Assembly (NCBI GenBank): GCA_946965045.2
Contig: OX337235.1
Location: forward strand, 2,976,001 to 3,040,000
From: Epithemia pelagica
Taxonomy: Eukaryota; Protista; Bacillariophyta
Direction: 5' to 3'
DNA: 64,000 nt
This document shows, piece by piece, positions 10,470-59,116 of this stretch. The number at the start of each line of letters is the position of its first letter. Positions within the stretch are counted from its first letter, which is position 1. Both the position numbers and the translations under genes were made by a program. Under the pieces are notes generated by a model. That model did no database searches and was not told the DNA's origin. It worked only from the letters and a program-made list of their open reading frames with translations.

Positions 10470-11100
10470 TTGGACCTGAGAAATCCATACTACAGCAACT
10501 GTACAAAACCATCAAGATTAACTGAAGAGGAACGGGTTCTTCTTAGACGCTTTGGTGTGAAGTACTTCCTTTGTCTTTCGAGTTGTGCTCGCATCGATTA
10601 TCATGATGTTGTTGTTACCGACGGACGACAGACTCAGGGACTCACTATTCCCCAGCGGGGGTGAGTTTTCGGGTGCTAAGTGCTAAAGAGTCATTTTCTG
10701 CGAGTCATTAGTCACATATTGTAGAGCATTCAATCACTAAACCCCAGGACTCACCACCGCTGGGAGAGAAGGGACACCACATTTCCTTTAAATTACGCCG
10801 GCACCAACTCCCGAAGCCCCGGCACCACGGAACTCCCCCGCTGTTCCAAATGTTCCAAAGGAAAAAATTACGACAGTCGAGTTTTTCTCCCACCTTTACT
10901 TTCGCGGGGAGAGACCAGCGAACACATCCTGCAGTCGGAGCAGTCTATCTGTCGCGAGGTCTTCACACATAGCTAGAGGAGTGCTAGAGGAGTAGTCGCA
11001 CTTGCCGTAAGGCCCAACAGGAACCGGAATGGCTCCCACAACCATTGAACTCGTAGAGCAGAATCGGTGACATCGTTACTCGGTGCAAATCTTGGAGATG

Positions 11101-12441
11101 TCAATATTCGAGATTGAGCTGGTTGACGAATGTTCCGAATGCGACTGAGCCATTGAACTGGATTTCTTCTGGCGACTCGATCGCCGCTTCGATATTCGAT
11201 TGGATCGCCTCAACGTCGTGGTGCTGGAGTGTTGTTTGATTCGCGGGGTCAACGTGGCGAAAATCGGGGTTGGTGAGCATGGCCGTCGACATGCCCGCCG
11301 TCCATTCCATCACCTGTGGGCGGATGTAACGGAGAAACGCGGCGGAGGACCATCGACCCAGGATCATAATCTTGAGGACGGAAGTGCGTGCCAAGAATAG
11401 CGCCATGGCGGCGCCCGAGCGGATGGAGTGAGTGCCAATTTCGGCTGGTCGGTAGCCGAACATGGAGAAGCCGCCGCCTGTGGTGCACGAAGAGCGAAGG
11501 AGGTTCATCGTGTCTTCTGCGCGGATGAAGCAAGGCTTTGGTTTTGATGTTTGAGCGAGAATCTTGGGATCGAACCAACAATTCATCGGTGTCTTTGCCG
11601 GTGCGTCTGGGTAGTAATGCAAGATTCGTCGAACGATACGGCCGCCGGTACGGACAGGGCAGAGGATCTTGTCGTGCGTCCGGCATTGGGTGCGAGTTTG
11701 GAATTTTTCTGCATTCTTTTGTTGGACGAACGTGATGGAGATGAAGAATGCTTCGTCGTCAAAATTTGGGTCGGTGGGGGAGATCTCGGATCGCATTTGG
11801 TCATTGCGCTTGAATCGGATGTTGCCAATGGTGAGAAGCTTGGTTTTTCCGCGCTGCTTTACAGTACTGTATTCGCAGCTTCTCATGGCGAAGAAAAAGG
11901 CCAAGATCGCGAGATCAGCCACGCACGCATGGAACGATGCTGAATCAACAATGTCTGCTGCAATTTTACATGCTGTGAGCCACATATGACGGAGGTGGTG
12001 CGGTGTAATCGCTTTTTGTCGGTTCTCCTCGGGGTCGAGTTGCTTCCAAGCCTTCTTCAGCGTTTCTATTATGGGGTGGAGGCGGTTGCAGCCCGGGAGG
12101 TGGCAGGGGCTTGGCCTCTCGAAATTCCTGAACTTCGATGCCAGGTCGCTAAGGGCCTTTTCGAGAGTTGACGCTCGAAGAGGCCCCGTAACTCCTTCGC
12201 TCCAAGTTCCGTCTCGCAGTCGTTGGAGGAAGGTTCCAACGATCTGCGATCGCGTTCGAATGGACGTGAAGCCGTCCAGAAAGGGGTTGTCGTGGAGATT
12301 GAAGAGTCGGAGGTGCAATAGCCACCGCTTCCATGATCGGTCTTGAGCTTGGTGGGACGATTCGACTCGTCCAAAGAAAATTCTTGTAGCCGCGGTGCGA
12401 CCGAGGAGATCCAGGATTTGATTTCGTTGGGCAATTCGCAA
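11101..12441 (-). CDS. Tyrosine recombinase of YR element 1
   Basis: Catalytic motifs MRSCEY, HSIRSG and GRWSS..FLRY. Overlaps the RNase H 3' end in another frame. Confidence 0.92.
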   Translation of the reverse strand: MRIAQRNQILDLLGRTAATRIFFGRVESSHQAQDRSWKRWLLHLRLFNLHDNPFLDGFTSIRTRSQIVGTFLQRLRDGTWSEGVTGPLRASTLEKALSDLASKFRNFERPSPCHLPGCNRLHPIIETLKKAWKQLDPEENRQKAITPHHLRHMWLTACKIAADIVDSASFHACVADLAILAFFFAMRSCEYSTVKQRGKTKLLTIGNIRFKRNDQMRSEISPTDPNFDDEAFFISITFVQQKNAEKFQTRTQCRTHDKILCPVRTGGRIVRRILHYYPDAPAKTPMNCWFDPKILAQTSKPKPCFIRAEDTMNLLRSSCTTGGGFSMFGYRPAEIGTHSIRSGAAMALFLARTSVLKIMILGRWSSAAFLRYIRPQVMEWTAGMSTAMLTNPDFRHVDPANQTTLQHHDVEAIQSNIEAAIESPEEIQFNGSVAFGTFVNQLNLEY

Positions 12442-15400
12442 ATCCTGAAATTCTTCGGAATCTGGTTCGGAAAGAGAGAGTGGATTTGTGAGGTAAGATC
12501 ATCATCGCAACAATCAAACGAACGTGATAACATGTCAGTTACCACGTTCTGTCTGCCTGGGATGTGCTCGGAATGGAGGGCAAAACGATGCTCTAGTGTC
12601 AGTTCTGTCAGCCGCGCAGAGACTCGTTGGTGGTTGGGCTTGTTCGCGCCGAAGGAGGACCGGTGCATCCAGCCGGTCGCTGAGCTACTATCCGATAAGC
12701 CCAGCACACAAGCGTCGGTTGGGAGAGCGCCGTCCCAGCACTCTTGCCAAATGGTGACAACCTGGCATATGAACTCAAAGAGGTTGTTGCTAAGTGATGG
12801 GTCGGGTGAACCCGTGGCTTCATCATCAGCGAGGTCTTCGGCTTCATGCGCCATCGCGTAGACTTCGGGGTCGAGGGCGACATGCCAGGCACGACCAGTG
12901 CGGATGGAGAATCCACCCATGCCGTATGGGCAGGAGTCTGCTATGACAACGTTGGTTGGGATGCGGCATGTTAAAAGGTTCATGCTCACGCCTCGGTGGG
13001 CATACTCAAGAAGCTTGACCCAGATCTCGAGATCGGTGCGGATCGATGGTGGGATGGAGTATCGGAACCAGGGACGGGGGCGTGGGCTTGGACGTCCTGT
13101 TTCGGGCTGGTTTGTCTCGTTGTCCGACGAAGTATGTCTGGCTACGTATCGCTTAATGATCTTGGTCTTGAATGCTTGCATTCGTTTTGTGTAAAACAGG
13201 GCAAGGGGGATACCCTTACAAGCATGGGTCATCTTGCCGAGAATGGACTCAATTTCATCGAAGGTCCAATATTTTCGTTCCGGGTCGACAAGGGATTTTA
13301 TCTGCTTGGTCCATCCGAGGTACTTGTCGCGAGGGAGGATCATAAGGAGACGGCGTGTATCCAGCAACCAACCCAATACACGCATTGTTTCGGAAGGTGC
13401 ACCTTCGGCCTTCATCTTGTCGGCCGCCAAAATCTCGGTTCGGTGGATTGGTTCGTCGGGGGCGACTGGTCGGACTAACATATGAAGAACGAGGGGAACG
13501 ATGCCTGTGGAGCGTTCGAGGTTGTCCGAATTATCGATGAAGACCTGCATCATGTCGTCAAGGTAGACGTCATGATATCCCTTTGGTTTCGTTTCTACGT
13601 CAACGGCGATGGGCATGCCAGGGTTGAATGGAACCGAATCATCGAGGCGGCATACGGGGCCCATCATGTCTTGGAGGGGCGAACGGCAAATGCGGGGGTG
13701 CCATTCATCCAGGTCAGTTAGATCATTGCATAAGTCACAGGCGGCTTCAGAAAAGACGCTGAACATTGCTGGGTGCGGGCGCCCTCCAAAAGACAACCGA
13801 GTAAGAATGTTGGCGAATTCTCCGCTGCAGTCGGTTGTAATAGTACTCGCGGTCAAGGTGCCGTCACCATTGATCCGCCGGTATGCTGAGCCCCAATCGA
13901 ATTTGCAAATGAGAATTCGATCGGTGGGGAATTGGAGGCGTAAAGCGACAATTTGGTGAATCAACCGATTCATACACCAACCGAAAACCAGGTCGGGAAG
14001 TTCGGAGTCGTCCACAAGGTCGTTCAAACTCGGTGAGAATCCAAGCGAGAATGATTGGTCGTGTGCGAGACGGTCTTTTATTACGATGTCGCCATGCTCA
14101 TTAATTCCAGCATGTTGAGCAACACCCAGGGGGCCAACGCGGCCATCCTTGATCTTTCGGGCGCAGTCAAAAGTGATGGGGAGGGAAAACCCAAACTTTG
14201 TATCCTTCTCAGAGACCTTGCGGAGGGCGTCGGGTCGTTTGACGGCTGATGAATGATTGCCGTATTCGAGGATGGCCTCATTTTCAAGTTCCCGGTCCGA
14301 ATCGGGTGGGAGGTTCTTGAATTTATAGCTGGCTCCACGAAATAGCATGGATGACAACAATGGCCAAAATGGGTGATGCTGGAGTAGGGGTTCGATGACA
14401 TGGATGGGACGGAATTCAGAACCTGGACTGATTGTGCTGTTTGGGTGGGCGTCAAACAGTGCTTGGAGATCGAAACCGTATTCTTCGATAAGGTCCGAGT
14501 TGGTCTGCGCGGCTGACAGGGTTAGTTGGTGTACGAACGGAGATGCCTGTGGAGTCGCAACTGAAGAGTTACAAATCGAAGCAATCCGAGCGACGGAGTG
14601 GGATACGTCCGTGGCAGAACGTGGTGGTCTCGGTATTTTGCGTGTGAAAATTCGAGATGGGTCGTTTGGAAGATATGGGTCCTGAAAGTCAACAGGAATC
14701 AAGCCAGAACGAGGTAGTGGTAGTGTAGCATCGAACTCACCTAGCAATTCTTCGCTAGAAACCATTTCATCTTGAAGACGGGAAAGGTTCCTTTGTAGGG
14801 ATTTGCCGGACAAGTCAGATGCCAGATTAGGGGATGGAGATCCTTCGAGACGTGGGCGTCCAAAAGGAATTTGTGAGGAGTCGCTTGGGGGATTGGGGGA
14901 AAACTGAGATTCCTCGTCTTGAGTCTTGGCAGCTGCGGCAACTGCATCCAGAAGGAATCGGTTGGGTGAAGACAATTGGGGGGGATCTTCAGGGGTCGCT
15001 CTAGAGTTTGGGACATCAACTTGGGATAAGTCGTGTAAGACCTGTACAGTCGAGTCTTTAGGGGTCTTGCGCAGAATCGAAGGTAGAGTCTTCTGGGGAG
15101 ATGGCATCTGTTTCCTCGAAACTGGGGCGTTAGTCGAAAAGGATTTACAACGGACTGTGTCGATGAAATTTACTCGATGAGGGACAGAAACCATGTTTGC
15201 AGGGGGAAATTTTGTGTTGATATCCTCTGCAGAAATCCGGCGCTCGTCTGAGAAAGTTCGAGGTATCACTGGAACTGGAGTTCGAGGGATCGAGCGAATA
15301 AGCTCGGTATCATCTGGTGCTATTGATGGGGAAGAAGGAGTATTAAGGATGGGCGCGGGAGGGACAAGAGGATTCAGGTACGTAGAAGAAGTGGAATCGT

Positions 15401-15452
15401 TAGGAGACGAAGGAGCAACACTATTTTGAATGACTCTTGACCCATCCTCCTG
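12069..15452 (-). CDS. pol: RT-RNase H (pol) of YR element 1, open from the codon after the gag TGA
   Basis: KFDWGSAYRRI, LSFGG, YLDD; RNase H ADSCPYGMGG, SDSSSA, HIPGRQNVVTDMLSR. No stop between 15452 and the track ORF start at 15269. Confidence 0.92.
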   Translation of the reverse strand, partial: QEDGSRVIQNSVAPSSPNDSTSSTYLNPLVPPAPILNTPSSPSIAPDDTELIRSIPRTPVPVIPRTFSDERRISAEDINTKFPPANMVSVPHRVNFIDTVRCKSFSTNAPVSRKQMPSPQKTLPSILRKTPKDSTVQVLHDLSQVDVPNSRATPEDPPQLSSPNRFLLDAVAAAAKTQDEESQFSPNPPSDSSQIPFGRPRLEGSPSPNLASDLSGKSLQRNLSRLQDEMVSSEELLGEFDATLPLPRSGLIPVDFQDPYLPNDPSRIFTRKIPRPPRSATDVSHSVARIASICNSSVATPQASPFVHQLTLSAAQTNSDLIEEYGFDLQALFDAHPNSTISPGSEFRPIHVIEPLLQHHPFWPLLSSMLFRGASYKFKNLPPDSDRELENEAILEYGNHSSAVKRPDALRKVSEKDTKFGFSLPITFDCARKIKDGRVGPLGVAQHAGINEHGDIVIKDRLAHDQSFSLGFSPSLNDLVDDSELPDLVFGWCMNRLIHQIVALRLQFPTDRILICKFDWGSAYRRINGDGTLTASTITTDCSGEFANILTRLSFGGRPHPAMFSVFSEAACDLCNDLTDLDEWHPRICRSPLQDMMGPVCRLDDSVPFNPGMPIAVDVETKPKGYHDVYLDDMMQVFIDNSDNLERSTGIVPLVLHMLVRPVAPDEPIHRTEILAADKMKAEGAPSETMRVLGWLLDTRRLLMILPRDKYLGWTKQIKSLVDPERKYWTFDEIESILGKMTHACKGIPLALFYTKRMQAFKTKIIKRYVARHTSSDNETNQPETGRPSPRPRPWFRYSIPPSIRTDLEIWVKLLEYAHRGVSMNLLTCRIPTNVVIADSCPYGMGGFSIRTGRAWHVALDPEVYAMAHEAEDLADDEATGSPDPSLSNNLFEFICQVVTIWQECWDGALPTDACVLGLSDSSSATGWMHRSSFGANKPNHQRVSARLTELTLEHRFALHSEHIPGRQNVVTDMLSRSFDCCDDDLTSQIHSLFPNQIPKNFRICELPNEIKSWISSVAPRLQEFSLDESNRPTKLKTDHGSGGYCTSDSSISTTTPFWTASRPFERDRRSLEPSSNDCETELGAKELRGLFERQLSKRPLATWHRSSGISRGQAPATSRAATASTP

Positions 15453-18398
15453 TCAAGAAGATTTCTTCTTCTTCGCCTCCGCAAAAGTCTTCTTGTAAAA
15501 GGCTGTCATCTCACTTGCTTTGCCATGCTCTTTGGGATCAGCGTGGCAGAAGTGGCAACTATTACCGTTGCGACAATACTTCATGGTAAAAAGTTTGTTG
15601 CAGAACGGTCGTTCTTTTCCATCAATAGTGAGTTTCGGTGTGGAGGCCAAGACATCTCGCGTAAAGACCTTCGAGTACTTCATATCCGGAGGGATGCACC
15701 ACTCGGGGGGGGGGAGTCATAGCGGGCACTCAAGGCACGAGAATCGGAGTCAGTCGAAGGAGAGGCACGTTTCTTAGAGGAATTGTCCGAAGAGCCGCCG
15801 GAGGACCGAGAAGAATCATGGCCGGGTCTCGCTTTGGAACGAATGGCTTGATCGATAAACTTCGGGAGCATCTTGCAGATATCCTCCTTGGATTCGATCT
15901 TGTCGCACAGTTTATTGAAGTGGAAGTCGAGTTTTTCACACCGAATGTCTTCAAGGCATTCAGCATCCTCCAACATCTTATCGATGAATCGCTGGATAGC
16001 GAAATCGATAGAGAATAAAACACGACAAAGGAAGGTTGGGTCGAAGTCCTGGCTGTTGCGGTAGATGACTCGGTTCGACAAAAAATGTTCGACCATCTTA
16101 TGGATCTGCAAACAAGCGTAAGAATTCTCATCCCAAATAGCGCAAGCGAAAAGGTAATAAGACCGAAGTTGCATGGAGAACTCATCACAGGTAAGTGGGA
16201 AAAACAACTTCTCGTTCACAAAGATATCTCGCATATCTTTTGTCGACAAACCGTTGTCATGGCGAAGAGAACTCTCATAAATGTCATGTTGAATATCATA
16301 GTCGAGGGATCGCTGGGAAGCAGAGCTCGAAGAACCGTTAGGATCAAATGAGAATGGGGAGAAACCACTGGGGTGATCCTCTCCACGCCAACGGAGACCA
16401 TACTTCTGCAGAACTCCGTATTGACCAAAGAGAATATGACAAGCGTTGTCGGACTTCCGAAATACTCGAGCGTGGATGGTCGAATAGAAGGTATGGGTGC
16501 TCTTCTGTCGAAAGAGTTCAGTAGCAACCTCGGATGGGGACTGGGGAAGTTCCGTCGAGTTCGGACCAGCCTGACCGAAGACAATGCCGTTGCGAAGGTG
16601 AGAGGTATGTTTGAAAATCTCACGTTTCTCGTCGTCTTTCTCTTTAGAAATGCTCTTGGAATGTTTGAGAAGGGACTCGGAAAATTGTTCGGATAGTTTA
16701 TCCGCCATGTAGATCGCATCAGCGGAAACGGAGGGACCATTGGGGTTTGTAGGTATGTTTGAAAATCTCACGTTTCTCGTCGTCTTTCTCTTTAGAAATG
16801 CTCTTGGAATGTTTGAGAAGGGACTCGGAAAATTGTTCGGATAGTTTATCCGCCATGTAGATCGCATCAGCGGAAACGGAGGGACCATTGGGGTTTGTAA
16901 TCGAATCCGGACTTGGGTGGGCTTGAGGAGCTAGGGAGACCGGAGGGATGCCTTGGGGAGCTTGTGGTGGGGGAGCGAGTGGTAGTGGAGGAAGAACTTG
17001 AGATACTGAACCAAAATTCAGAGTCGGGAATAGACGGTTCACATGATTCTTCAGGGCAAGCAAGGCAGAGTCAAAGGCAGCTGGAACTTCAAAAGAAACC
17101 GACTCGATCTTAGACGCCTTATGGTGCGCGAACCAAAGGAAGCGGAACAAAGGAAGGGAAGCTTTGACCAAATCATTGTCTAAGGGAAACGAGGAAAGTT
17201 TCTTCTGAGCGTCTTCGGGAACGGAACGAGCCCAGCGGCGGGACACGATACCAAACACACAAGAAGCAATGGAAGGAGCGCCACAGCGAGGAGTACCATA
17301 TCCGAACTTCGAGAATAGCTGCAACAATTCACCTGAGAAGGCGGGATGAATAGGGAAAAGTCCCTTACAAGTGAAGGAATTCACAGGAGATTAGGGATCC
17401 GAGGGGCATTTCGGTTTCTTCAGGTTTCCAAACGAAGCAAAGTCCAAACAAAACTTGGGGAGGCAATCGTCAGGGCGTTTCTTCTTGGGTGAGGGAGTCA
17501 TGGCGTCGTACACGCAAGTGCCAAGGATCTCGGCAGCTGATGGGATACCGGAGTGATCCATGTTCAGAAGAAGGCCTGAATCGATTTCATCCGTATCAAA
17601 GCAGATAGGAGGGGAACCAAATTTTGAGTGGCAAAGACCTATAAAAGAAGGAACGGGATTCAAGAAGGTACCAGAATCCGGTCCAACCAAAAGGTTGTGA
17701 ACGAAACGGATCTTGCCTTTAGGGTCGACGCAAAGGAAGGCTTGAGAGGAAGCATTCAATTTGCAGGACAAGAAACGTTGTAGTTCGGGACTCGAAGAAA
17801 CTTATTCAAATCCTTTGCAGAACTTCGACCAGGATAACAGATCACGGTCCAGTGACAAGTTAAAAGGAAGAGTAAAGCTATCAGACCAATCCAAAGGAGG
17901 GCATGAGGAAAGGCTGTCAAGAACCGAAGTCGGGATAGGATGAGGTGACTTGAAGATATCGGAGGGGCGGCTAAGGGGGGAGCCACCATTCGAAGTACCA
18001 AGATCCACCTGCTGGTTCGACGTCTGACGTTTGGGAGAAGGAGGGGGTTTAGGTTTAGCAGAAGAACGTTTGGGAGATTTAGGAAACTTCTTCTTCGAGG
18101 CCTTCGCGGTATCAGAAGAAGAGCTCAGAGGAAGGTTCTTCTCGTTCTGATCAGAGAAGGAAGGATCATCACCATCCTCGTCCTCGTCACCAGAAGGGGC
18201 AGGAGTTGAGGAATGATAGGGAGCAGAGGGATCATCGTCAACACCAACACCATGGTGGGATTCCAGAAGTTGAGAAGGTTGGGAAACCACCGCTGCAACG
18301 GAAGCAGTCCCGTCTGCGCAATGAGGAGCAACAGAAACCCCAGGTCCCTCATCTTCATCGAAGAAGAGGTCGTCCTTGTAAGGTTGAGTAACAGTCAT
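15453..18398 (-). pseudogene. Gag-like ORF1 of YR element 1, disrupted
   Basis: Homologous to intact ORF 31661-34552. In-frame TAA at 17802-17804 and 17391-17393; frameshifts from the 148-bp duplication and near the G-run at ~15705. Ends in a C-x8-C-x5-C-x3-H zinc finger. Confidence 0.85.
16603..16898. repeat. Apparently perfect 148-bp tandem duplication
   Basis: Units start at 16603 and 16751. The ORF track shows identical peptides in ORFs 15680-16888 and 16216-16740. Confidence 0.95.
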
Positions 18399-18977
18399 AG
18401 CGAAGAAGGTAGCGGCAGCAACAACTTTTGATTGTCTTAGATCTATCTATCTGTAGACCTCGTCTCAGGATGGCAGTGTCAGAGCACACGATCCCAAGAT
18501 TGTGAGCTCTAGACTCTTGCGCATGGATTGGTCACTGGGCCAGTATCTTGTGTCCACGAGATAGTCCACCTGGCGCGTCATTGCCCGACATGCGCGCGCT
18601 TCACTGCCCTGCTCCGACGTACGCACGACAGACACTACCTTGGTTGTAATCCAATGAGGAGATGCGGCAAAGAGTTCGTTGGAAGGAAGAGAGTTGGCGC
18701 TGCTATGGAAATTTTGAGAAACGGCAAAGACAGTTTCGTCCAACATGTTTGCCATGTCTGTATTGCACGAGACATAGCCGAGGCCGTCTGGGAAGAGGCA
18801 AACCCTGGAGCGGCTGTAGGTGAAACAAGAATGAGAGACCCATTTTTCGGAGTTGGCGCGCGTACCGACTCTTTGGATCTTCTTCATTTTGTTCACGCCG
18901 AGTAGATGAACTTTTCATTCCAATGGTACGAGACTGTTGAAACCGATGGAGCTATTAGGGCAAACCCGATAGCTCCG

Positions 18978-19385
18978 TAATTTGCCATTGTTCCGTCGAG
19001 CAGAACTGGAAAAACGGTGTACGATTACAAGAACCATGTTGCGGAACGCGCGAACAATGAGTTTTCCAACTACCATGTCGTGCTAGTCTCCTGCCTAAAG
19101 CCAACGAACCAAAATCATGGCTACGATAATCTTTTCCGAAGCGCGCAAAGCGACGCGGACTTGAGAAGGATTGGCGTTGAATTTCGCAGTTTCCTTGGCA
19201 GCCTCATTCCAACGGACAAAAATCGCATCGTGCTCATTTTGGATGAAGCTCAGCACTTGGCAAACATGAACAACGGATTTCTGGTGAGGTCCCTTCGGTG
19301 GTTCTTGCGGGAAAGGAGGAGTCAAGTACGAGTAGTGGCAGTACTTTTTGGCTACATCCGGTTCAATAGCCGCCTTGTTTCCTGA
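18978..19385 (+). pseudogene. Degraded P-loop NTPase fragment (second copy at ~58136-58543)
   Basis: FAIVPSSRTGKT Walker A-like motif followed by IVLILDEAQHL Walker B-like motif. Truncated on both sides. Confidence 0.45.
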
Positions 19386-31660: not shown

Positions 31661-34552
31661 TCAATTGTTGTTGACGTTGGCGTACGCGGAGCGGTAAAAC
31701 TCGTCCATCGCCGCTTTCTTGTCATGCTTGCTGGGATCGTCATGGAGGAATTTACACTTCTTCCCTTTCTTGCAAATCCCTTTGGTGAAAAGAATATTGC
31801 AGAAATGTTGTTTCTTGTTGTTCTTTTCGACGAATGGGATGTTTGTGAGAACGCTTGGGGGAAAGACACGCATATAATTCGCATTCTCGGGAATCCGCCA
31901 ATTGGAAGGAGAATCGAAAGTGATGGGGGTCTTGTTGGTCTCAGAATTCGACGAGGAAGAATTTTGTTGTCGCTTGGAGCTCGGGGAACCGTCATCAAAG
32001 CCACCGGATCGTTTCTTCTGGGAAGTCTTCTGTCGGTTTGCTTGGAATTTGGCTTGGAGAGCTGGAGGAAGAGAGACTAAGGTCAAACCAGTCTTGACGG
32101 TGAAAAGAATCCAATTCACTCGCTCTTCAAAGTCTCGGAATCCCACGTCTCCAATGGATGATGCACTCGAAAGGGTAGAGACGAATTCTTGGACGGCCTC
32201 GTCGATGGCAAACAGAAATTGGCCGAAATAAAAATCGTTGCCAGAGCTTTGTTGTTTGGCCATGATCTTGGTGCGAAACTGATGATAAAAGTTCAAGACT
32301 TTGAGGATCTGGTTCGCAATTGCTGAAGAGGCACCGCAAAGTCCTTTTGCACAAGCCCAAAAGGAACGAAGTTGTTTTTTGAATTCATCGGCGGTTCTTG
32401 GGAAGAACAAGTTGTGGTCCGAGTAAAGTTGCTGCATCTCCTTTGACTGCTTCATGTCATTGAGATGACATAAGGAAGCATCGTGGATTTGCTGGCGAAT
32501 ATTCTTGTCCAAGGTGTTGTTTGAATCTAGCCCCGGAATTGCGTACGGGTCGAATGAAAAGGGGCTGAAGCCACCAGGACAAGCCTCCGATTTCCAATGC
32601 AATCCAAGTCGTTGGATCACAGTGCATTGGCCGAAAAGGATTGTGCACGCATTGTCGGATGGGTCGAACACTTCTGCAAGGAAAGACTCAAAGAATGTCG
32701 CTGAATTCTTTGACTTCCAAACAATCTTGATGATCGGAGACAGTTCGTCCGGGAGAGATGTTGCCTTTGGTGTAATCGATCCCAGACGTAATTGTTTTTG
32801 GGCATTCAAGGGTATGTCCCTAAACATGCTCTTGGACTCTGGAGCAGTGATATCGTCCTCATTTCCACTCTTCTTGGAAGTAACTTCTTTGATACATTTT
32901 GAGAGCAAGACCATTTCGGGAGAGACGAAATGAACGTTGCCTTCATCGTCCAACATGCGAACGCCGCCTTGAGGAGAAGAACGGTCACGCAATTGTGAAG
33001 AGTCTGGAAGAGGCAAACAATCAACCGGTGATGGTGACCGAAAGCGCACACTTGAGGAGGACCGACGAAGGGATGGGCGTCGAGGGACAGAGGACTGTTC
33101 TTGTGGGTGCGAATCGTTTTTGGGAAAGATTCGAGAACGATGATCCAACAATGTAGTAGTATTCGCTTTCTGTGGGTCTGCAGGGATGGATGGGAAGACG
33201 GACTGTAGCTTGGGATTCTTTGGACGATGGAGAACAATCCACAAAAAACGAATGATTGGTTCCTGAATCTGGAGAAGAGGGTAATCGATCGGCATACCTA
33301 ACTTCTTGGACTCTGGGGACAGATCTCTGGAGGCTTCCCACCAGTGAAACAAAGCCACTTTATACAATCCACTTGCAATATCTTCGAATGACACGGTAAT
33401 GTCTTGGCTCGAACGGTCAGTATTGTGGAGCATCAGACCAGACAAGCATGGAGGAAGAAGACACAAACTTGAGCATAGAAATTCACGGTCAGACTTCGAG
33501 CCAGTGTCGGAGGAGGAAGCTACGGTGAAGGTCTTGAACTTGGAGGGATCAAATGAGAGATGGGGAACGGACGAAGAATCGGAGAAATCGTCGATCTCAA
33601 CAACACAATGTTCAAGGATCTCGGCAAAGGTCGGAACATTAGGGAAAACATGTTCGGACAACAAAAGGGGAATGTCGTCACTGTCGATCTGAAAGGGCGG
33701 AGACTCGAATGAGATTCGGTCAAGACCATAGAATGTCGCTTGAGGATCCACGAACGTTCCACAATCGGCAGGGCAGCAGATGTTGTGGAAGAGGAAGGGG
33801 CGTCCATTGCGAGACAAACCAAGGAATGCCAGTGGGTGGCTCTTCATCTTCGAGGTCAGCCAAACATGGAGATCGTCGGAGGAGGATAGACGGTTAAAGC
33901 TGGAGCACACCTGCGACCACAAGGTAGGGTCCCGAGAAAGAGCGACGTGAAATGGCTGGAGAAAAGAGTCGCACCAGTCGATCGGGTCGACTTTTGTCAA
34001 CTTTGAGAAGATATGTTCCAAGGCTTTGTCTCCAAGCGAATGGAAGTCCTGCGTAAAGTAGAACTCATGGCGGTAGGCGCCTGCACGGAGAGAGGACGAC
34101 GGATTGTCGTTGTTGACGTCGTCACCATCCTTGTCGTCAACAAGGATGAAATCATCCTTATCAAGGGCACTTGGAGGAGCATCTTCATCGGAGCGGGATG
34201 TGGAAGACTTGCAAACCGGAGGAAGCGGAGCCTTAAGCCTCTTGTTGTCAGACTTGGACAGGAACTTGGACTTGGAGGAGGCAATAGCATCCAAGAAGGC
34301 TTGTTCTTGGAGGTCAGCGTCAGAATCCACCGAAGAGTCATCAGCTTTAGCATGGTGATCCTTGAGGGAAGACTTGTCGGAGGCGGAAGGCTTGCGATCG
34401 CCATTCGAATCATCGGGTTGGGAGACGACCGCCGCCGCTGCGGGAGCAGACAAAGAAGGAGAAGGGGGATCAGATCCTTTCGTCGACGTCGGCGTCTTAC
34501 CAAAGAGATCCTCAAGGAAAGGGTTGGAACCGGTAAAAGTCATGATGAACAA
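31661..34552 (-). CDS. Gag-like ORF1 of YR element 2 (963 aa, intact) with a C-terminal CCCH zinc finger
   Basis: Uninterrupted ORF with CNILFTKGICKKGKKCKFLH (C-x8-C-x5-C-x3-H) and an acidic/Ser-rich N-terminus. The likely ATG is at 34543. Confidence 0.85.
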   Translation of the reverse strand: MFIMTFTGSNPFLEDLFGKTPTSTKGSDPPSPSLSAPAAAAVVSQPDDSNGDRKPSASDKSSLKDHHAKADDSSVDSDADLQEQAFLDAIASSKSKFLSKSDNKRLKAPLPPVCKSSTSRSDEDAPPSALDKDDFILVDDKDGDDVNNDNPSSSLRAGAYRHEFYFTQDFHSLGDKALEHIFSKLTKVDPIDWCDSFLQPFHVALSRDPTLWSQVCSSFNRLSSSDDLHVWLTSKMKSHPLAFLGLSRNGRPFLFHNICCPADCGTFVDPQATFYGLDRISFESPPFQIDSDDIPLLLSEHVFPNVPTFAEILEHCVVEIDDFSDSSSVPHLSFDPSKFKTFTVASSSDTGSKSDREFLCSSLCLLPPCLSGLMLHNTDRSSQDITVSFEDIASGLYKVALFHWWEASRDLSPESKKLGMPIDYPLLQIQEPIIRFLWIVLHRPKNPKLQSVFPSIPADPQKANTTTLLDHRSRIFPKNDSHPQEQSSVPRRPSLRRSSSSVRFRSPSPVDCLPLPDSSQLRDRSSPQGGVRMLDDEGNVHFVSPEMVLLSKCIKEVTSKKSGNEDDITAPESKSMFRDIPLNAQKQLRLGSITPKATSLPDELSPIIKIVWKSKNSATFFESFLAEVFDPSDNACTILFGQCTVIQRLGLHWKSEACPGGFSPFSFDPYAIPGLDSNNTLDKNIRQQIHDASLCHLNDMKQSKEMQQLYSDHNLFFPRTADEFKKQLRSFWACAKGLCGASSAIANQILKVLNFYHQFRTKIMAKQQSSGNDFYFGQFLFAIDEAVQEFVSTLSSASSIGDVGFRDFEERVNWILFTVKTGLTLVSLPPALQAKFQANRQKTSQKKRSGGFDDGSPSSKRQQNSSSSNSETNKTPITFDSPSNWRIPENANYMRVFPPSVLTNIPFVEKNNKKQHFCNILFTKGICKKGKKCKFLHDDPSKHDKKAAMDEFYRSAYANVNNN

Positions 34553-47480: not shown

Positions 47481-50400
47481 ATGGAAGCGACACCTCCCAA
47501 GACACCGTTTACTCCTCCTGAGGACAAGTCAAGTCATATAACCAACCAAGATCTCTTCGACCATATAACTAAAGGCATCTTTGGTTGTAATGATGAACGA
47601 GCCCAATCACTTCAAAAGTGGATGCGACATCATGGTTTTGAACATATCCTTCATGTCCTCGACCATGTTGCAACTGATCCCGAGGAGACACTCAAGGATC
47701 TCATGCAATACAAGGTTGGAAAACAAGTCAACGACCTACAGACAAGTACAAGATTACAACTCAAACTAATGGCATATTGGTTACTACAACAACGGCAACT
47801 CCAACATGGAAAACTACCCCGTGCTACATGCATGAACCTCACGAGGGACCAATATAACGATTGGAGGATCAACACCGACTTTACCAAGTCTGGTATGAAC
47901 CAAGACCCAGTTTCTCCTCTGAAATCACCTGCACACTCCGTATCATCCCGATCTCCCACTACATCCTCTACAACATCTCAATCCATGTTAGATCTCTCTG
48001 CTTTCAAGAAAGGAACCAAAAGAGATGCAACAGCATTTGAATCATTCAAAGACGAACGATACTTTGATTTGTTTTGGCGTGTATTCAAATCAACTGCGAA
48101 AGCACAAGGATTGTCGAATGTTCTTGATTTCGATTACAAGGTACCCAAGGATGACGAATGCGCAGAGTTACTTTTCCGAGAACAACAAGTCTTTGTCTAT
48201 TCTGTACTTGTACGTATTATCCAAACCGACCAAGGAAGAGCATATGTTTGAGAACATGAACATGATGAAGATGCAAGAGCCGTCTTGAAGAAACTCCATG
48301 TTCTACACACTGAATCTGATCTAGCTAAGCGAGAAGTGTTACGCCTAACAAGCTACATTTCGAATCTTCGACTGGATGACTCTTGGCGTGGTACAACTCG
48401 TCAGTTTCTCCTACATTTTCAAGAACAGCTACGACTTCTGGATAATCTTGTACCACTGTCAGATCGTATCCATGACCATACAAGGATGACCTTCCTTATG
48501 CAAGCTGTTGAAAAGGTACCTGATTTAAGACGAGTCAAGATCTTGGATAACGTTGTCAACACAAAATCTGGAGCCAAGTCTCTCTGTTATCAATCATATT
48601 TCCGCCTGCTTCTTGATGCTGCTTTTGACCATGACCAAGCTACCCGAACTTCTGCGTCTAACCGCCGTCGTCATGTAAAGCAACATGAATTTCAGTTGGA
48701 TGAACCTTTTGAACCAGTGGAGCCCCCTGACTACCAGATCAACAACACGAATATCCAATCCGAAAAGTCCCCAACTTCGTCGAAAATCAGCCTTCCAAGA
48801 GATGTATGGTTTAAACTCTCTGAAGAGGATCGGCAAATCATTGTCGACTTCAATAAATCCGTCCAAGATTCCCCGACAACTCCACGCAAGGTCCAAACAC
48901 ATTCTCTTGACATTGATCCTGAACCAGACCCTGATCCTGATGCCAACAACATTGGTGATACCCATCAAGATGCACCAGAACAAGATCCATTCGATACATC
49001 CTCTGATCCGGTTACCCAGTTCGTACACCAGGCTATTGCATCGACAGATATCAATCATCCAGCATCTGACCTCAGCAACATCTTGTCAACTTCTACGACA
49101 AAGTCAAGTCCTAAAGTCAAGTTCAAGTCTTCTGCCGATCACAAACAAAAGGTTCATATGTCACGATATCTATTCTCCCGCAAATCCACCTTTTCTGGTA
49201 ATCAACTCATCGATCGAGGTGCCAATGGAGGCCTTGCAGGATCTGACATGCGTATCCTTGCCAAAACCGGACGTCATATTACCATCGTAGGTATTGACAA
49301 TCATGAATTGACTGGCCTTCCAGTTGTTACCTGTGCTGCCAAGTTTGATACAAGTGATGGACCCATTATTGGTATCTTCAATGAGTATGCCCACTATGGA
49401 AAGGGTTTATCTATCCATGCCCCAGCGCAATTTGAACATTTCGGCCTATCTGTCGACGAACGATCCGTCAAGGTTGATGGCAAACAACGCATTACTACCC
49501 TTGATGGACGTGCATTGCCCTTACGAATCAAGGATGGCCTTGCATACATTCAATCTCTGGGAATCCCTTCTGATGACGATATGGATAAATATCCGCATAT
49601 TGTGTTCACTTCACCCCATATCTGGGATCCTTCTGTTCTTGACCATACCCATCCAGACCCCCATCAAGACCCTGCACCGAACTGGACATCTGTGGAGACT
49701 GATGGTAGTATGGAAACATACCCCTATGACCAATATGGGGAGTATACCGATCGCGTTGTATGCACTTTGAATCTCCTCCTTGATCTCCCATATGATCATG
49801 GCCCCGATACACCTTCCTTCTTTTCCATCTATGCTGATCAAGATGGCAACGACCCCACACTTCATGCGTCTGTCCACAAACTCTACAAGGAACAATACGA
49901 CTGGAAGAAATTTCGCCCTTTCTTTGGGTGGCAATCGGAAGACGTAATCGCCGATACGTTCAAGCATACAACTCGTCATGGACACATTTCCTTTGACCAG
50001 GATACCTTGAAGAAACACTTTAAGGCCCGGAATCCTATCCTTAACCTACCACGACGGCATGAACCCGTTGCCACTGACTCCATCTTCTCCGACACCCCGG
50101 CTGTTAACCATGGTGGCAAGATTGCTCAGATTTTTGTTGGTCGTGATACTTTGGTTACTGACATTTATGGTATCAATTCTACCAAGCAATTCGTCAATAC
50201 CCTCCAGGATAACATTCGTACACGTGGTGTCATGGAGACTTTGATCAGTGATGGTGGTTCGTCACTTATTTCCCACAAGGTCAAGGATATTCTTCGCACC
50301 CTTCTGATTGGTGAATACCGTTCCGAGCCCTATCATCAACACCAGAACAAAGCTGAGAACCGCTACCAGACCGTTAAGTGTATGACCAATGCTATCATGA

Positions 50401-53162
50401 ATGCCTCTGGTTGCCCTGCTTCTGCATGGTTACTTTGTTTAGAATATGTGTGTGACCTCCTCAATCACACTTCCTCTCCCACCCACTCTGGCCGCACCCC
50501 TCTTGAGGCTCTTACCGGTACCCCACCCGACATTACCCATCTCCTTTTCTTTCCTTTCTGGGATGAGGTCTACTATCGTGTCGACCCTTCTGAACCTACC
50601 TCCGGTTCTTACCCTTCGTCTCCCGACGAGAAGATTGGCCACTGGGTTGGTTTTGCCCACAATGTTGGTGATGCCTTTACTTGGAAGATCCTCACTGCCG
50701 ACAACGTCATCATCTACCGTTCCGCTGTCCGTCGCGTTGCCTCCACTACCCCCAACCTTCGTGTGGATATCTCTTCAGGGGAGGAGTCGCCGCATAAACC
50801 CACTGACAAGCAAGGTGACACTGTCTTTATTCGCAGCAGAAGTGAAGACCCATCCACACCTATGCCAACAATTGACTACGACAATTTAGTTGGACGCACA
50901 TTCCTTTGTGACACTGAAGAGAATGGGGAGCGCCACCGAGCACGAGTAATCAAACGAGTTGTTGACCTGGAACAAGATGCAACCAAACAAGAAGATCGAC
51001 TCAAATATATCTTTCGCAAGTCTAACTCCAATGTTGATGAGATGATCTCCTACAACCAGCTCATGGAATACATTGAAAGGGATAATCAAGCCCAAACGAC
51101 AGGGGATAGTCTCTTCCGATTCAGAGACGTTATTGCACACCAAGGACCTTTGAACTCAAGCGACCCAGACTATAAAGGGAGTAAATATAATGTCCTTGTT
51201 GATTGGGAGACTGGGGAGACGACATACGAACCTCTATCTCTTATTGCAAATGATGACCCCATCACAGTCGCCATCTATGCCAAGAAAAATGGTTTGCTGG
51301 ATCTACCTGGATGGAAACATCTCAAGCGATACGTCAAGACAAGCAAAAGACTCATTCAAGCAGCTAAACAATCCAGGATCAAACAAGTTCGTCGCTCTAT
51401 CAAGTACAAGTTTGGTTTCCAAGTACCTCGCACCTATGAAGAAGCAGTGGAACTAGACAAGCAATTTGGGAACACGAAATGGCAAGACGCAACAGAATTG
51501 GAACTCTCACAGATCCAATCGTATAACACTTTCAAGGACCATGGAAAAGCCAAGTTCATTAATGGGAAATTGGCCAATGCACCAGAAGGATATCATAAGA
51601 TAAGAGTACATCTGGTCTTTGATGTCAAGCATGACGGAAGGCACAAGGCACGACTTGTTGCAGATGGACATCTCACCAAGGAACCCGTTGAGACCATCTA
51701 TTCAGGGGTTGTCTCCATTTGCAACCTTCGCATTGCCATATTTCTTGGAACCATGAACGACATGGAAATATGGGGAGCAGATATTGGGAACGCATACCTA
51801 GAAGCATTGACAGGAGAGAAGATTTTCATCATTGCAGGACCAGAGTTCAAGGAGTTAGAAGGACATATCTTGATCATCTACAAGGCATTATATGGTCTCA
51901 AATCCTCAGGTGCTCGCTGGCATGACAAACTGTTTGATGTTCTCATTGATATGGGATTTTCTCCAAGCAAGGCTGACCCTGATATTTGGATGAAGAAGGC
52001 TCCTGGAGAAGACTGTTATGAATATATCGCTGTATATGTTGATGACTTAGCTATCGTTGCCATGGACCCTGAAGCTGTCTGCAAGATCTTTACAGAAAAA
52101 TACAACTTCAAACTCAAAGGAGTCGGACCTATCGAGTATCATTTGGGGTGTCGTTATACCAAAGATCCAGACGGTACACTTGTGTTTGACCCACGAAGGT
52201 ACATCGAGAAGATGATGGATACCTATGAACGATTGTTCAATGAGAAACCCAAGAAAGCAAAGCCGCCAGTCATTGCTAAAGATCATCCTGAACTCGATGA
52301 CTCTGAGCTCTTAGATGAAGAAGGGACCCAGCATTTCCAGACTCTTATTGGACAACTGCAATGGCTAATTACCATTGGCCGTTTTGATGTCTTTCCTGCT
52401 ACCATGACTCTATCAAGGTTCAGAGCTGCTCCAAGGATTGGTCATTTGAAGCGAGCTAAACGCATCTATGGATACCTCATGTCATTTCCTGATGGGTCTA
52501 TCAGATTCCGCACTGGGGAGCCAGATTTATCAGCTTTACCTATCCAAGAATACGATTGGAGTCGTACCGTATACATGGACGCCAAGGAACGTATCCCTGA
52601 GGACTGTCCAACCCCACTTGGACGTTTTGTGACAACTATACATTATGTCGACGCAAATCTCATGCATGATATGGTTACTGGGAAAGCAGTTACAGCCATC
52701 CTGCATTTTGTAAATGGTACACCCGTGGACTGGTACAGTAAGCGACAAGCCACAGTGGAAACAGCCACGTATGGATCTGAATTTGTTGCCGCAAGGACTG
52801 CAGTTGATCAGATCACGGAGCTACGCCTTACACTCCGATACTTGGGAGTCCCTCTGCGAGAGAAGAGTTACATGTTTGGAGATAACCGTTCTGTCGTTAT
52901 CAATAGCACCACACCACACTCAATCATCTCCAAGAGGCACCATCTCCTATCCTATCACCGAGTCAGTGAAGCTATCGCTGCAAAGTACATCGCATTCTAC
53001 TGGAAAGATGGAAAGACAAACCCAGCTGATATCCTCAGTAAACATTGGGAATTCGCCGCAGTTTGGCCCATGCTCAGATCTTTGTTATTCTGGAGAGGAA
53101 AAATCCAGGAAAGTGATGAGGGAATTGACAATCCTCATTCAACGAATTGTGGGGAGTGTTAG
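47481..53162 (+). pseudogene. pol: Copia gag-pol polyprotein with one premature TGA (48249-48251)
   Basis: ORFs 47481-48251 and 48285-53162 are in frame, reading RAYV*EHEH versus RAYVREHEH in the relative. PR IDRGANGGLAG; IN VATD, ISDGG, HQNKAE; RT KARLVA, LYGLKSSG, YVDD; RH YVDA, GDN, NPADILSK. Confidence 0.92.
53148..53156 (+). promoter_or_regulatory. Short polypurine tract (TGTGGGGAG)
   Basis: Directly precedes the 3' LTR. The same 9-mer precedes the 3' LTR of the nested element. Confidence 0.7.
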
Positions 53163-56898: not shown

Positions 56899-59116
56899 CC
56901 TTGAACTCGAGGGAAGCAACCACAGAGCCATGTTTGTGTGTAATGCGAGTAGGCTAACACCAACACGGTTCGTCAAATCGGTTAGAGTCCCAATATTGGC
57001 ATGTCTTGTGAATCCAGTTGCAAGGCTGAGTTTTGGGGATCATCGGAGAAATCCTAATTTGACATGTCTAGTACAAGATTTATAAAAAAGTTTACTTGAT
57101 GATACGCGTTAGTCGCAGGTGTGCGATTATCACGGCGACGTTGTTGCTCGCCCACTCGTTGCGCTGTACTTAGAGTGACTTGATTAGATCACCGGATCAC
57201 CAATCGCTCTTCGTTCATACTAGACCAGGTCACCTTGTATTCGTCCCGCTCCCTGACAGTCCCAATATTGTCACTGACCATGGCTGCATTGGTTTTAGCA
57301 GTGGACGAAAGTGGTCCATCAACAGTGACCAATCTTATCCATGGATGCCTTTCGTCCCGCGAGAATGATGCCACTACGACCAAAACTGCCAAAGAATGCA
57401 TCGCTAGAGCTTTGCCTCACTGTGAAGGAAGTCAATAGACATGAGTTCCCGGTTTTGTGGTCGTGGCGCACTCAGTGACGATGAAAATACTTTGTTTGAA
57501 TCCGTTATTCATTGTCAAGACTCAATTCCGTACAACCTTTTGGATTGACCACTTTCACAGTCATCGGAGATTAGAACCATCAGCAATCCATTCAATTCAT
57601 TAGGCACATATTGTAGAGCATTCAATCACTAGACCCCAGGACTCACCACCGCTGGGAGAAAAGGGACACCACATTTCCTTTAAATTACGCCGGCACCAAC
57701 TCCCGAAGCCCCGGCACCATGGAACTCCCCCGCTGTTCCAAATGTTCCAAAGGAAAAAATTACGACAGTCGAGTTTTTCTCCCACCTTTACTTTTACCGT
57801 GGTTGTAATCCAAGGAGAGATGCGGCAAAGAGTTCGTTGGAAGGAAGAGAGTTGGCGCTGCTACGGAAATTTTGAGAAACGGCAAAGACAGTTTCGTCAA
57901 AGAAGGTTGCCATATCTGTATTGCACGAGACATAGCCGAGGCCGTCTGGGAAGAGGCAAACCCTGGAGCGGCTGTAGGTGAAACAAGAATGAGAGACCCA
58001 TTTTACGGAGTTGGCGCGCGTACCGACTCTTTGGATCTTCTTCATTTTGTTCACGCCGAGTAGATGAACTTTTCATTCCAATGGTACGAGACTGTTGAAA
58101 CCGATGGAGCTATTAGGGCAAACCCGATAGCTCCGTAATTTGCCATTGTTCCGTCGAGCAGAACTGGAAAAACGGTGTACGATTACAAGAACCATGTTGC
58201 GGAACGCGCGAACAATGAGTTTTCCAACTACCATGTCGTGCTAGTCTCCTGCCTGAAGCCAACGAACCAAAATCATGGCTACGATAATCTTTTCCGAAGC
58301 GCGCGAAGCGACGCGGACTTGAGAAGGATTGGCGTTGAATTTCGCAGTTTCCTTGGCAGCCTCATTCCAACGGACAAAAATCGCATCGTGCTCATTTTGG
58401 ATGAAGCTCAGCACTTGGCAAACATGAACAACGGATTTCTGGTGAGGTCCCTTCGGTGGTTCTTGCGGGAAAGGAGGAGTCAAGTACGAGTAGTGGCAGT
58501 ACTTTTTGGCTACATCCGGTTCAATAGCCGCCTTGTTTCCTGAAGAGGAGAATGCCACGTCGTTTTCCCCGATTGGGAGACCATGACACGAAGTTCTTCA
58601 TGAACGTATCGAAAGATTTGTTCCCGCCCATGGTTGACTTGTGGACAGTGGGTTCTTTGTCGAAGCGGATTGTCGCCAGAAACAGCGAATGAGTACACCT
58701 GGGCAGTACCCTTCGGAAGGCCACGTCATGGTTCTTGTAATTGCGTCCAACTCGTTTGATGTCAGGTCCCCTCAGTATGTTGGCCTGTATGAAGGATGAA
58801 GGCAAGCGCGTAAAATCGGTTGCCGTGAAGCAACTTGATGCATCGCGCCATACAGTTCCGTAGTTTGTTATGTGGCACGTCGAAATTGCTGGGATTGAGG
58901 AAGTCATCCGTTTTGGTTTCTTTTTCAGAATGAGTTGATCTGACATCACATCTATCTTTTATAGCTAGCCAGTGCCAATCATGGTAATCACATCCTTCTA
59001 GCTAGCTATTCAAGCCATATCACACCAGAGCTTTTCTCCGTGACCAATGGAGAGAACCCCATAACCCCCCGTGTTTGGTACAATGGCGAGGACAGGGTAT
59101 TGTGTTGTCGGAACTG

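Follow-up and report, generated by a model that had tools for sequence, protein, structure and literature searches.

An in-frame UGA and a covarying downstream stem-loop suggest stop codon readthrough between gag and pol in a family of tyrosine recombinase retrotransposons

Introduction

Among the viruses in which translation proceeds through a stop codon, spacers of at least 8 nucleotides (nt) between the stop and the stimulatory RNA structure are the rule in Moloney murine leukemia virus (MoMLV), Venezuelan equine encephalitis virus (VEEV), Sindbis virus (SINV), and Colorado tick fever virus (CTFV), so that the structure comes to lie at the entry channel of the ribosome (PMC13517186). The open reading frames (ORFs) of tyrosine recombinase (YR) retrotransposons have been described as frequently overlapping, with an in-frame stop or readthrough unmentioned (PMC9210276, PMC3783388), and for long terminal repeat (LTR) elements of diatoms, gag and pol have been noted, without analysis, to be separated by one stop codon or frameshift or by none (PMC2806351). 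Here we describe the gag-pol junction of a YR retrotransposon, denoted element 1, in a 64,000 nt stretch of the genome of the diatom Epithemia pelagica (assembly GCA_946965045.2, contig OX337235.1, positions 2,976,001 to 3,040,000 of the forward strand; this whole stretch is hereafter called the window, and positions are numbered within it), together with the relatives of this element among genomic copies and in metagenomes.

The original prediction, made from the letters of the window, was that Pol of element 1 is produced as a Gag-Pol readthrough product. Our comparative analysis supports this reading at the level of the family, for which programmed UGA readthrough yielding a Gag-Pol fusion is very probably the best explanation. 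As judged from the copies and relatives compared, the family has an invariant TGA at the junction, a reading frame shared by gag and pol, coding selection that starts right after the stop, no conserved start codon for pol, and a covarying stem at a fixed distance from the stop. The accompanying statement that no such case was known among YR retrotransposons agrees with our searches of the full-text literature on YR, DIRS, and Ngaro elements, in which no in-frame gag stop or readthrough was found described, although key reviews outside the coverage of these searches may mention it.

The gag-pol junction of element 1

The junction consists of the following features, all on the minus strand.

15543..15602 (-), CCCH zinc finger (C-x8-C-x5-C-x3-H) at the C terminus of Gag, from the translation
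15453..15455 (-), in-frame UGA between gag and pol, the proposed recoding site, preceded by AAA UCU UCU
15444..15452 (-), spacer of 9 nt, opening with the C at +4 (15452)
15434..15443 (-), 5' arm of the conserved stem, GGGUCAAGAG
15361..15370 (-), 3' arm of the conserved stem, CUCUUGUCCC
12069..15452 (-), Pol ORF (reverse transcriptase plus RNase H), whose 1127 codons share the frame of the UGA, ending with TAA at 12071-12069 and without a start of its own near the 5' end

The bases and coordinates originally read at this site, a TGA at 15455-15453 followed by C, are exact, and pol indeed continues in the same frame without a stop, from 15452 to the TAA. The stem also starts where it had been placed, exactly 9 nt after the UGA, with 15443-15434 facing 15370-15361: GGGUCAAGAG and CUCUUGUCCC pair at 9 of 10 positions, the sole mismatch being a U-U at the fourth, and enclose a loop of 63 nt. 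The possible outer GAGGAU/AUCCUU helix (15449-15444 with 15350-15345) is present and is used in the minimum free energy (MFE) fold of 150 nt, but it is not conserved in the relatives. Against three sequencing runs (DNA-like), there are no variants in the TGA, the spacer, or either stem arm.

The assertion that gag reads into the UGA holds for one part of gag in this copy. The ORF directly before the TGA, with 76 codons (15683-15456), carries the zinc finger and is in frame with the stop, but the long gag ORF upstream (16888-15680) is not, because the window copy contains frameshifts that are absent from intact relatives. The zinc finger itself has a weak match in Pfam (zf-CCCH_DUS3L, E 0.0034) below the curated cut-off; the segment is retained in 66 genomic copies, and similar motifs occur in the metagenome relatives.

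Conservation of the stop codon and the reading frame

A six-frame genome survey with the zinc finger segment yielded these 66 copies, which are 35-100% identical within the segment. Past the zinc finger, every one of the 66 first meets a TGA stop, in frame with the continuing pol; in most, the frame after the TGA stays open to the end of the DNA examined (~430-500 codons). The base at +4 is C in 62 copies and T in the remaining 4, so the UGA-C context, which had been put forward as a point to compare among additional members, turned out to be nearly invariant.

A search with the pol protein identified relatives, 29-35% identical, in metagenomes of marine and other origin. All six distinct distant contigs that were read at the sequence level contain an in-frame TGA between a zinc finger Gag and Pol, followed by C, A, or G, bringing the number of sequences with TGA at the junction to 72. 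By called gene coordinates, gag and pol occupy one frame in 8 of 8 metagenome relatives, two of which are known by coordinates alone. Copies with different gag and pol frames, or without a stop, would have contradicted the original prediction; none was found among the 66 genomic copies or the 8 metagenome relatives.

The true terminators of pol in nine intact elements are TAA (6) or TAG (3) and never TGA, and ORF3, the third ORF of the element, ends at a TGA that serves as an ordinary terminator. Given that ORF3 ends in TGA and pol in TAA or TAG, TGA is a stop in this host and is specifically selected at the junction. Judging from this terminator usage, TGA is specific to the gag-pol junction.

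Coding selection downstream of the stop codon

For the first 100 codons after the stop, the ratio of nonsynonymous to synonymous change (pN/pS) was calculated for 14 pairs of copies in each of the three frames. The ratio in the pol frame (frame 0) ranged from 0.20 to 0.71, versus 0.5 to 1.95 in the other two frames, and was the lowest of the three in 13 of the 14 pairs. The signal of coding selection is clearest in the closest pairs of copies, for example, 0.20 versus 1.18 and 1.95. As measured by these comparisons, the pol frame is under purifying selection from the first codons after the stop.

The position of the first in-frame ATG past the stop varies among the copies of the family between codon 5 and codon 308. 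With this position so scattered, there is no conserved initiation site that could serve a separately translated Pol, and a separately initiated pol mRNA, which would have refuted the original proposal, is not indicated.

A covarying stem-loop at a fixed distance from the stop

The 5' arm of the stem lies at a constant distance from the stop throughout the family, with arm sequences and loop lengths that vary. More than 20 distinct natural arm pairs are represented in the family, and several subfamilies have wholly different, still complementary arms: GGGUUGAUUGA/UCAAUCAACCC, GGGUCAUCGU/ACGAUGACCC, GAGUCUUCGG/CCGAAGACUC, GGACUGUUUG/CAAACAGUCC, and GGAUCGUCGAA/UUCGGCGAUCC. Because the arms encode different amino acids across subfamilies, their complementarity is not a by-product of protein conservation.

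As an alignment-free control, the energy of the duplex between each 5' arm and the sequence downstream of it in the same copy was compared with the energies obtained after exchanging arms. Own arms averaged -13.9 kcal/mol; arms taken from other copies gave -10.2, shuffled arms -9.3, and 12-mers from the upstream coding sequence -6.8. The difference between own and swapped arms is highly significant (Mann-Whitney p = 8e-8). A candidate long-range pairing that flanks the junction (15609-15628 with 15320-15339; 20 nt, 85% complementary) was rejected as a chance match, given that the own and swapped energies were equal (-16.4 versus -16.8).

Folding without an imposed model places the stem at the same site. 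In single-sequence MFE folds, the first pair is at nt +13, that is, after a 9-nt spacer, in 12 family members and at +12 in one, so that the conserved position is recovered in 13 of 14 folds of family members; all 18 single-sequence folds have negative z-scores, from -0.8 to -4.3. In five of six distant relatives, unrelated hairpins begin 7-9 nt past the stop. RNAalifold, applied to the 14 closest junctions, recovers the originally proposed helix unaided, and 76% of the stem cells of these junctions are paired, versus at most 53% with the partner slid.

A MAFFT alignment of 21 divergent junctions (A2) was discarded because differing loop lengths misaligned the 3' arms, and was replaced by the stop-anchored duplex analysis and a covariance model. 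This model (R1), built on 11 short-loop members, matches 36 representative junctions with E < 0.02; among the junctions it missed are the window copy (E 9.1) and the subfamilies that diverge most (L040-L049). In the resulting alignment of 36 sequences (A6), 79.9% of the stem cells are paired, versus at most 48.6% with the partner slid, and double changes occur in 8 of 12 pairs, a number reached by none of 500 shuffles. The covariation that was to be sought among additional family members is therefore borne out by both the double changes and the swapped arms. From covariation across the family, we conclude that the stem-loop downstream of the stop is real.

The H-type pseudoknot of MoMLV has no evident counterpart in the family: a single conserved helix was found, with no Rfam match, and no search aimed at pseudoknots was made.

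The proposed mechanism and its alternatives

Under the proposed mechanism, most ribosomes would stop at the UGA and release Gag, and a minority would decode the UGA with a near-cognate tRNA and go on to produce a Gag-Pol fusion. The C following the UGA makes for a weak termination context, which would favor readthrough, and a stem-loop whose first pair lies 9 nt past the stop would be positioned at the mRNA entry channel when the UGA occupies the A site. Four features that mark programmed readthrough were found in the family: a conserved in-frame stop, coding selection downstream without a start of its own, a leaky UGA-C context, and a covarying structure about 8 nt downstream.

Several points weigh against this reading. 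We infer the occurrence and the efficiency of readthrough, the residue inserted at the UGA, and the function of the fusion as Pol. The RNAalifold consensus energy is weak (-4.8 kcal/mol), and the consensus stem is short, with a core of 7 base pairs closing a long loop of 19-87 nt. Alignment A6 is fitted to its own model, for which reason the swap control and the unaided folds were given more weight, and all its sequences are drawn from one genome. One distant relative (L088) has no clear hairpin at the expected distance. The window copy, when folded alone, has no significant structure (z -1.1 for 150 nt and -1.75 for 99 nt), and in both folds the MFE structure picks a competing register that uses the spacer or a downstream CCC; the 150 nt after the stop, where the original prediction looked for the stem to form, did not fold accordingly in this copy, and we set its single-sequence fold aside as uninformative on its own. 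Furthermore, because gag of the window copy is broken, the readthrough interpretation applies to the family and not to a product of this locus. Finally, the gag-UGA-pol junction of the retrotransposon Tca2, which includes a possible pseudoknot, gave no readthrough in reporter assays, and an internal promoter was found instead (PMC2194720). Tca2 shows that a gag-UGA-pol architecture does not guarantee canonical readthrough.

The Tca2 precedent, where the junction sequence alone was insufficient, leads directly to the strongest alternative, namely, that the UGA is bypassed or Pol is expressed independently of the local signal, through a minor internal promoter, a separate pol RNA with a non-AUG start, or a trans-acting factor, as concluded for Tca2, with the hairpin serving another purpose. 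We consider this improbable. If pol had its own mRNA or an internal start, there would be no need for gag and pol to share a frame, yet one frame is kept in all 66 copies and in all the relatives; nor would TGA be needed in preference to TAA or TAG, and coding selection on the first codons past the stop, in the absence of a conserved ATG, would not be predicted.

Less likely still, the stem-loop could be a cis element for RNA packaging by the zinc finger Gag, for dimerization, or for priming of reverse transcription, located beside a stop that is leaky through its context alone. The long, variable loop and the zinc finger of an RNA-binding type at the end of Gag, directly upstream, would suit such a role, and UGA-C is leaky by itself. 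However, the first pair stays 8-9 nt from the stop across subfamilies that differ in arms and loop lengths, a spacing for which a packaging signal would have no reason, and the unrelated hairpins of the distant relatives also follow spacers of 7-9 nt.

Splicing of an intron across the UGA, resulting in a mature mRNA with a continuous Gag-Pol frame, is conceivable in a eukaryotic host with introns and yet very unlikely, being hard to reconcile with the observations: protein conservation and coding selection abut the stop from both sides, the window copy has no GT in the last 30 nt ahead of its stop, and an intron would demand neither TGA-C inside it nor a hairpin at a fixed distance. Recoding of the UGA as selenocysteine (Sec), with the hairpin acting like a Sec redefinition element (SRE), is the least credible option, even though a UGA with a nearby hairpin recalls the arrangements of the bacterial Sec insertion sequence (SECIS) and the eukaryotic SRE, because a search of the element (window 10800-18700) against Rfam with E up to 1 gave no match to any family, SECIS included, ORF3 terminates at TGA as an ordinary stop, and a selenium-dependent mobile element would be unprecedented.

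The element, its open reading frames, and its relatives

Apart from pol, the following features of element 1 and of a related element in the window were delineated.

10903..18635 (-), whole YR retrotransposon copy (element 1), nested in another repeat, with ends set by comparison of the flanks
15680..18446 (-), remnants of the gag-like ORF1, broken at four places and uninterrupted in intact relatives
11101..12441 (-), ORF3, tyrosine recombinase, overlapping pol at its end, in a different frame
31661..31663 (-), in-frame TGA-C at the corresponding site of a second, diverged YR element (locus L081), with the stem GGGUUGA/UCAACCC after a 9-nt spacer

The boundaries of element 1 derive from an empty site: the flanks 10705-10902 and 18636-19000 adjoin each other in a second copy of the host repeat (57597-57794 and 57795-58158). 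This uninterrupted copy (57597-58158) shows no obvious target duplication at 57794/57795. No terminal direct or inverted repeats of at least 16 nt were detected at the ends of 10903-18635; the split direct repeats of Ngaro elements (A1 ... B1 A2 B2) were likewise not found there at that length. The DIRS1 arrangement, inverted terminal repeats combined with an internal complementary region, was not found either, with no terminal inverted repeats of at least 16 nt detected in 10903-18635, and Pfam gives no match to the methyltransferase domain of DIRS1.

As in the order DIRS generally, the element encodes an ORF for reverse transcriptase (RT) plus RNase H and a tyrosine recombinase ORF with the R, H-x-x-R, and Y residues, and no DDE integrase or protease; Pfam gives no match to an integrase or a protease. 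The element is a member of a large, old family of tyrosine recombinase (Ngaro/DIRS-like) retrotransposons. The order of its ORFs (gag-like, RT/RNase H, tyrosine recombinase) is Ngaro-like, and its termini are not.

Two intact relatives, L095 and L096, have three ORFs each. ORF1 is a single uninterrupted frame of 941 and 968 codons, respectively, terminating in TGA; ORF2, of 1127-1179 codons, is in the same frame and begins at the codon right after that TGA; and ORF3, of ~300-470 codons, is in a different frame. Across the family, Gag comprises ~940-970 amino acids (aa) with the CCCH zinc finger at its end, and Pol (RT-RNase H) ~1000-1190 aa. The Gag of these two relatives (L095 880-3705 and L096 1194-4100, both reverse complement) is unusually long, at 941-968 aa, and Pfam recognizes no domain in it beyond the C-terminal CCCH finger. 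In one metagenome contig (L087, 78-11102), two related element copies are arranged in a head-to-tail tandem (gag, pol, YR, gag, pol).

In an alignment of 14 Pol proteins (A3), the motifs K-x-D-x-x-S-A-Y (motif A), YLDD, LGW-x-LD, D-A-C-P-Y-G, and N-x-V-A-D-x-L-S-R are invariant down to 28% identity, as are the RNase H-type D/E/D/N-x-V-A-D motifs. The neighbors of Pol in the Atlas, identified with a language model, are eukaryotic clusters with RVT_1, RT_RNaseH, and Dam. Comparison with Pfam gave nothing above the cut-offs, with RVT_1 not recognized, and no match to PDB sequences was obtained, even with a profile of 14 sequences. The same is true of the RT/RNase H family as a whole (57 database relatives, P0001-P0057), for which no Pfam domain is recorded and no PDB sequence matches, yet the motifs are plain by eye. 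On the strength of the motifs and the Atlas neighbors, ORF2 is identified as an RT/RNase H.

ORF3 has invariant R187, H338-x-x-R341, W364, and Y372 (alignment A7), and 70 of its 100 Atlas neighbors belong to Tyr-recombinase or Phage_integrase clusters; Crypton-derived DUF3504, ALOG families, and protelomerases appear lower in the list. The match of ORF3 to Phage_integrase in Pfam is weak and below the cut-off. Given the invariant catalytic residues and these neighbors, ORF3 is assigned as a tyrosine recombinase. A profile of ORF3 (A7 positions 46-99) hit nothing in PDB but chains of green fluorescent protein over ~45 residues, with E down to 1.5e-6; this is almost certainly a spurious motif resemblance, and the hit was dismissed.

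The window also contains a copia-like element (47481-53162, plus strand) whose gag-like (256 aa) and pol (1625 aa) ORFs lie in one frame, separated by a single TGA at 48249-48251 that is followed by G. The fold at this junction is unremarkable (z -0.63), and its hairpin starts directly after the stop, without a spacer.

Degradation of gag in the window copy

In contrast to the single uninterrupted ORF1 of the intact relatives, gag of the window copy contains in-frame TAA codons at 17804-17802 and 17393-17391 (in stop-to-stop frames). A perfect 148-nt tandem duplication at 16603-16898, which is not a multiple of 3, shifts the frame, and a 1-nt indel near 15705 breaks it again. Across the sequencing runs, one contig joins the 148-nt duplication as a single unit, and two other runs have roughly double depth over the unit. 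At the indel, the contigs of runs X1 and X3 are one base shorter, and X2 is identical to the window; the indel is polymorphic or allelic. The shorter form would unite the long gag ORF and the zinc finger ORF in one frame, as in the relatives.

At 15680-15683, the stop of the shifted gag and the ATG of the zinc finger ORF overlap as ATGA. This overlap was considered as a reinitiation signal and rejected: the relatives have Leu here within a single continuous ORF, which makes the overlap a by-product of the frameshift. With its signal intact and its gag disrupted, the window copy is probably not itself a source of Gag-Pol.

Implications

The expression of Pol in YR retrotransposons is essentially unstudied, published accounts treating their ORFs as overlapping or separate, and this family offers a clear, deeply conserved recoding signal together with natural compensatory mutants. 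Were it confirmed, a third order of retroelements would join the viruses and the few LTR elements with structure-stimulated UGA readthrough, and diatom genetics would gain a natural readthrough cassette. When these genomes are annotated, pol should be joined to gag across the UGA; gene callers assigned arbitrary downstream pol starts to the metagenome relatives.

More tentatively, and with considerable doubt, we suggest that a UGA followed by a spacer of 8-9 nt and a hairpin might be a host-wide, convergent means of controlling the Gag:Pol ratio in unrelated classes of retroelements (YR and copia). For the YR elements, which have no protease, the product would be a Gag-RT-RNase H fusion of ~2070 aa that stays unprocessed and delivers the enzyme to the particle formed by Gag and RNA. 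If true, host-wide use would point to a termination machinery that, in this lineage in particular, tolerates structure-stimulated UGA readthrough.

Comparison with known systems

Like the canonical YR retrotransposons (DIRS1, Ngaro, PAT, and VIPER/TATE), the element described here lacks a protease and an integrase, and its three ORFs follow the same order as in Ngaro. Unlike them, the copy analyzed shows neither split direct repeats nor inverted terminal repeats, and its RT is not recognized by the RVT_1 profile of Pfam.

Tca2, a Ty1/copia element of Candida albicans, similarly keeps gag-UGA-pol in a single frame and may have a 3' structure (PMC2194720). It differs in being an LTR element, and its junction failed to direct readthrough in reporter experiments; the comparative evidence is much stronger for the present family (invariant TGA in 72 sequences, covariation, and a fixed spacer).

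The alphaviruses SINV and VEEV and the coltivirus CTFV share with this family UGA-C, a stem-loop at least 8 nt downstream, long-range stems around large loops, and support from covariation, according to the account of Firth et al. (2011) given in PMC13517186. In those RNA viruses the signal lies in replicase genes, whereas here it lies between gag and pol of a retrotransposon, and there is no sequence similarity.

The gag-UAG-pol arrangement of MoMLV resembles the present one in having a single frame, a single stop, a 3' RNA structure (with a spacer of 8 nt in MoMLV), and a signal that overlaps the coding sequence (PMC13517186). The stop here is UGA rather than UAG, and a simple stem closes a long loop, with no second, pseudoknot-forming stem identified; moreover, unlike MoMLV, the element lacks both a protease and a DDE integrase, using a tyrosine recombinase for integration. 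MoMLV produces its Gag-Pol fusion in a set ratio (PMC13517186), and it is likewise a Gag-Pol fusion that we propose for the present family.

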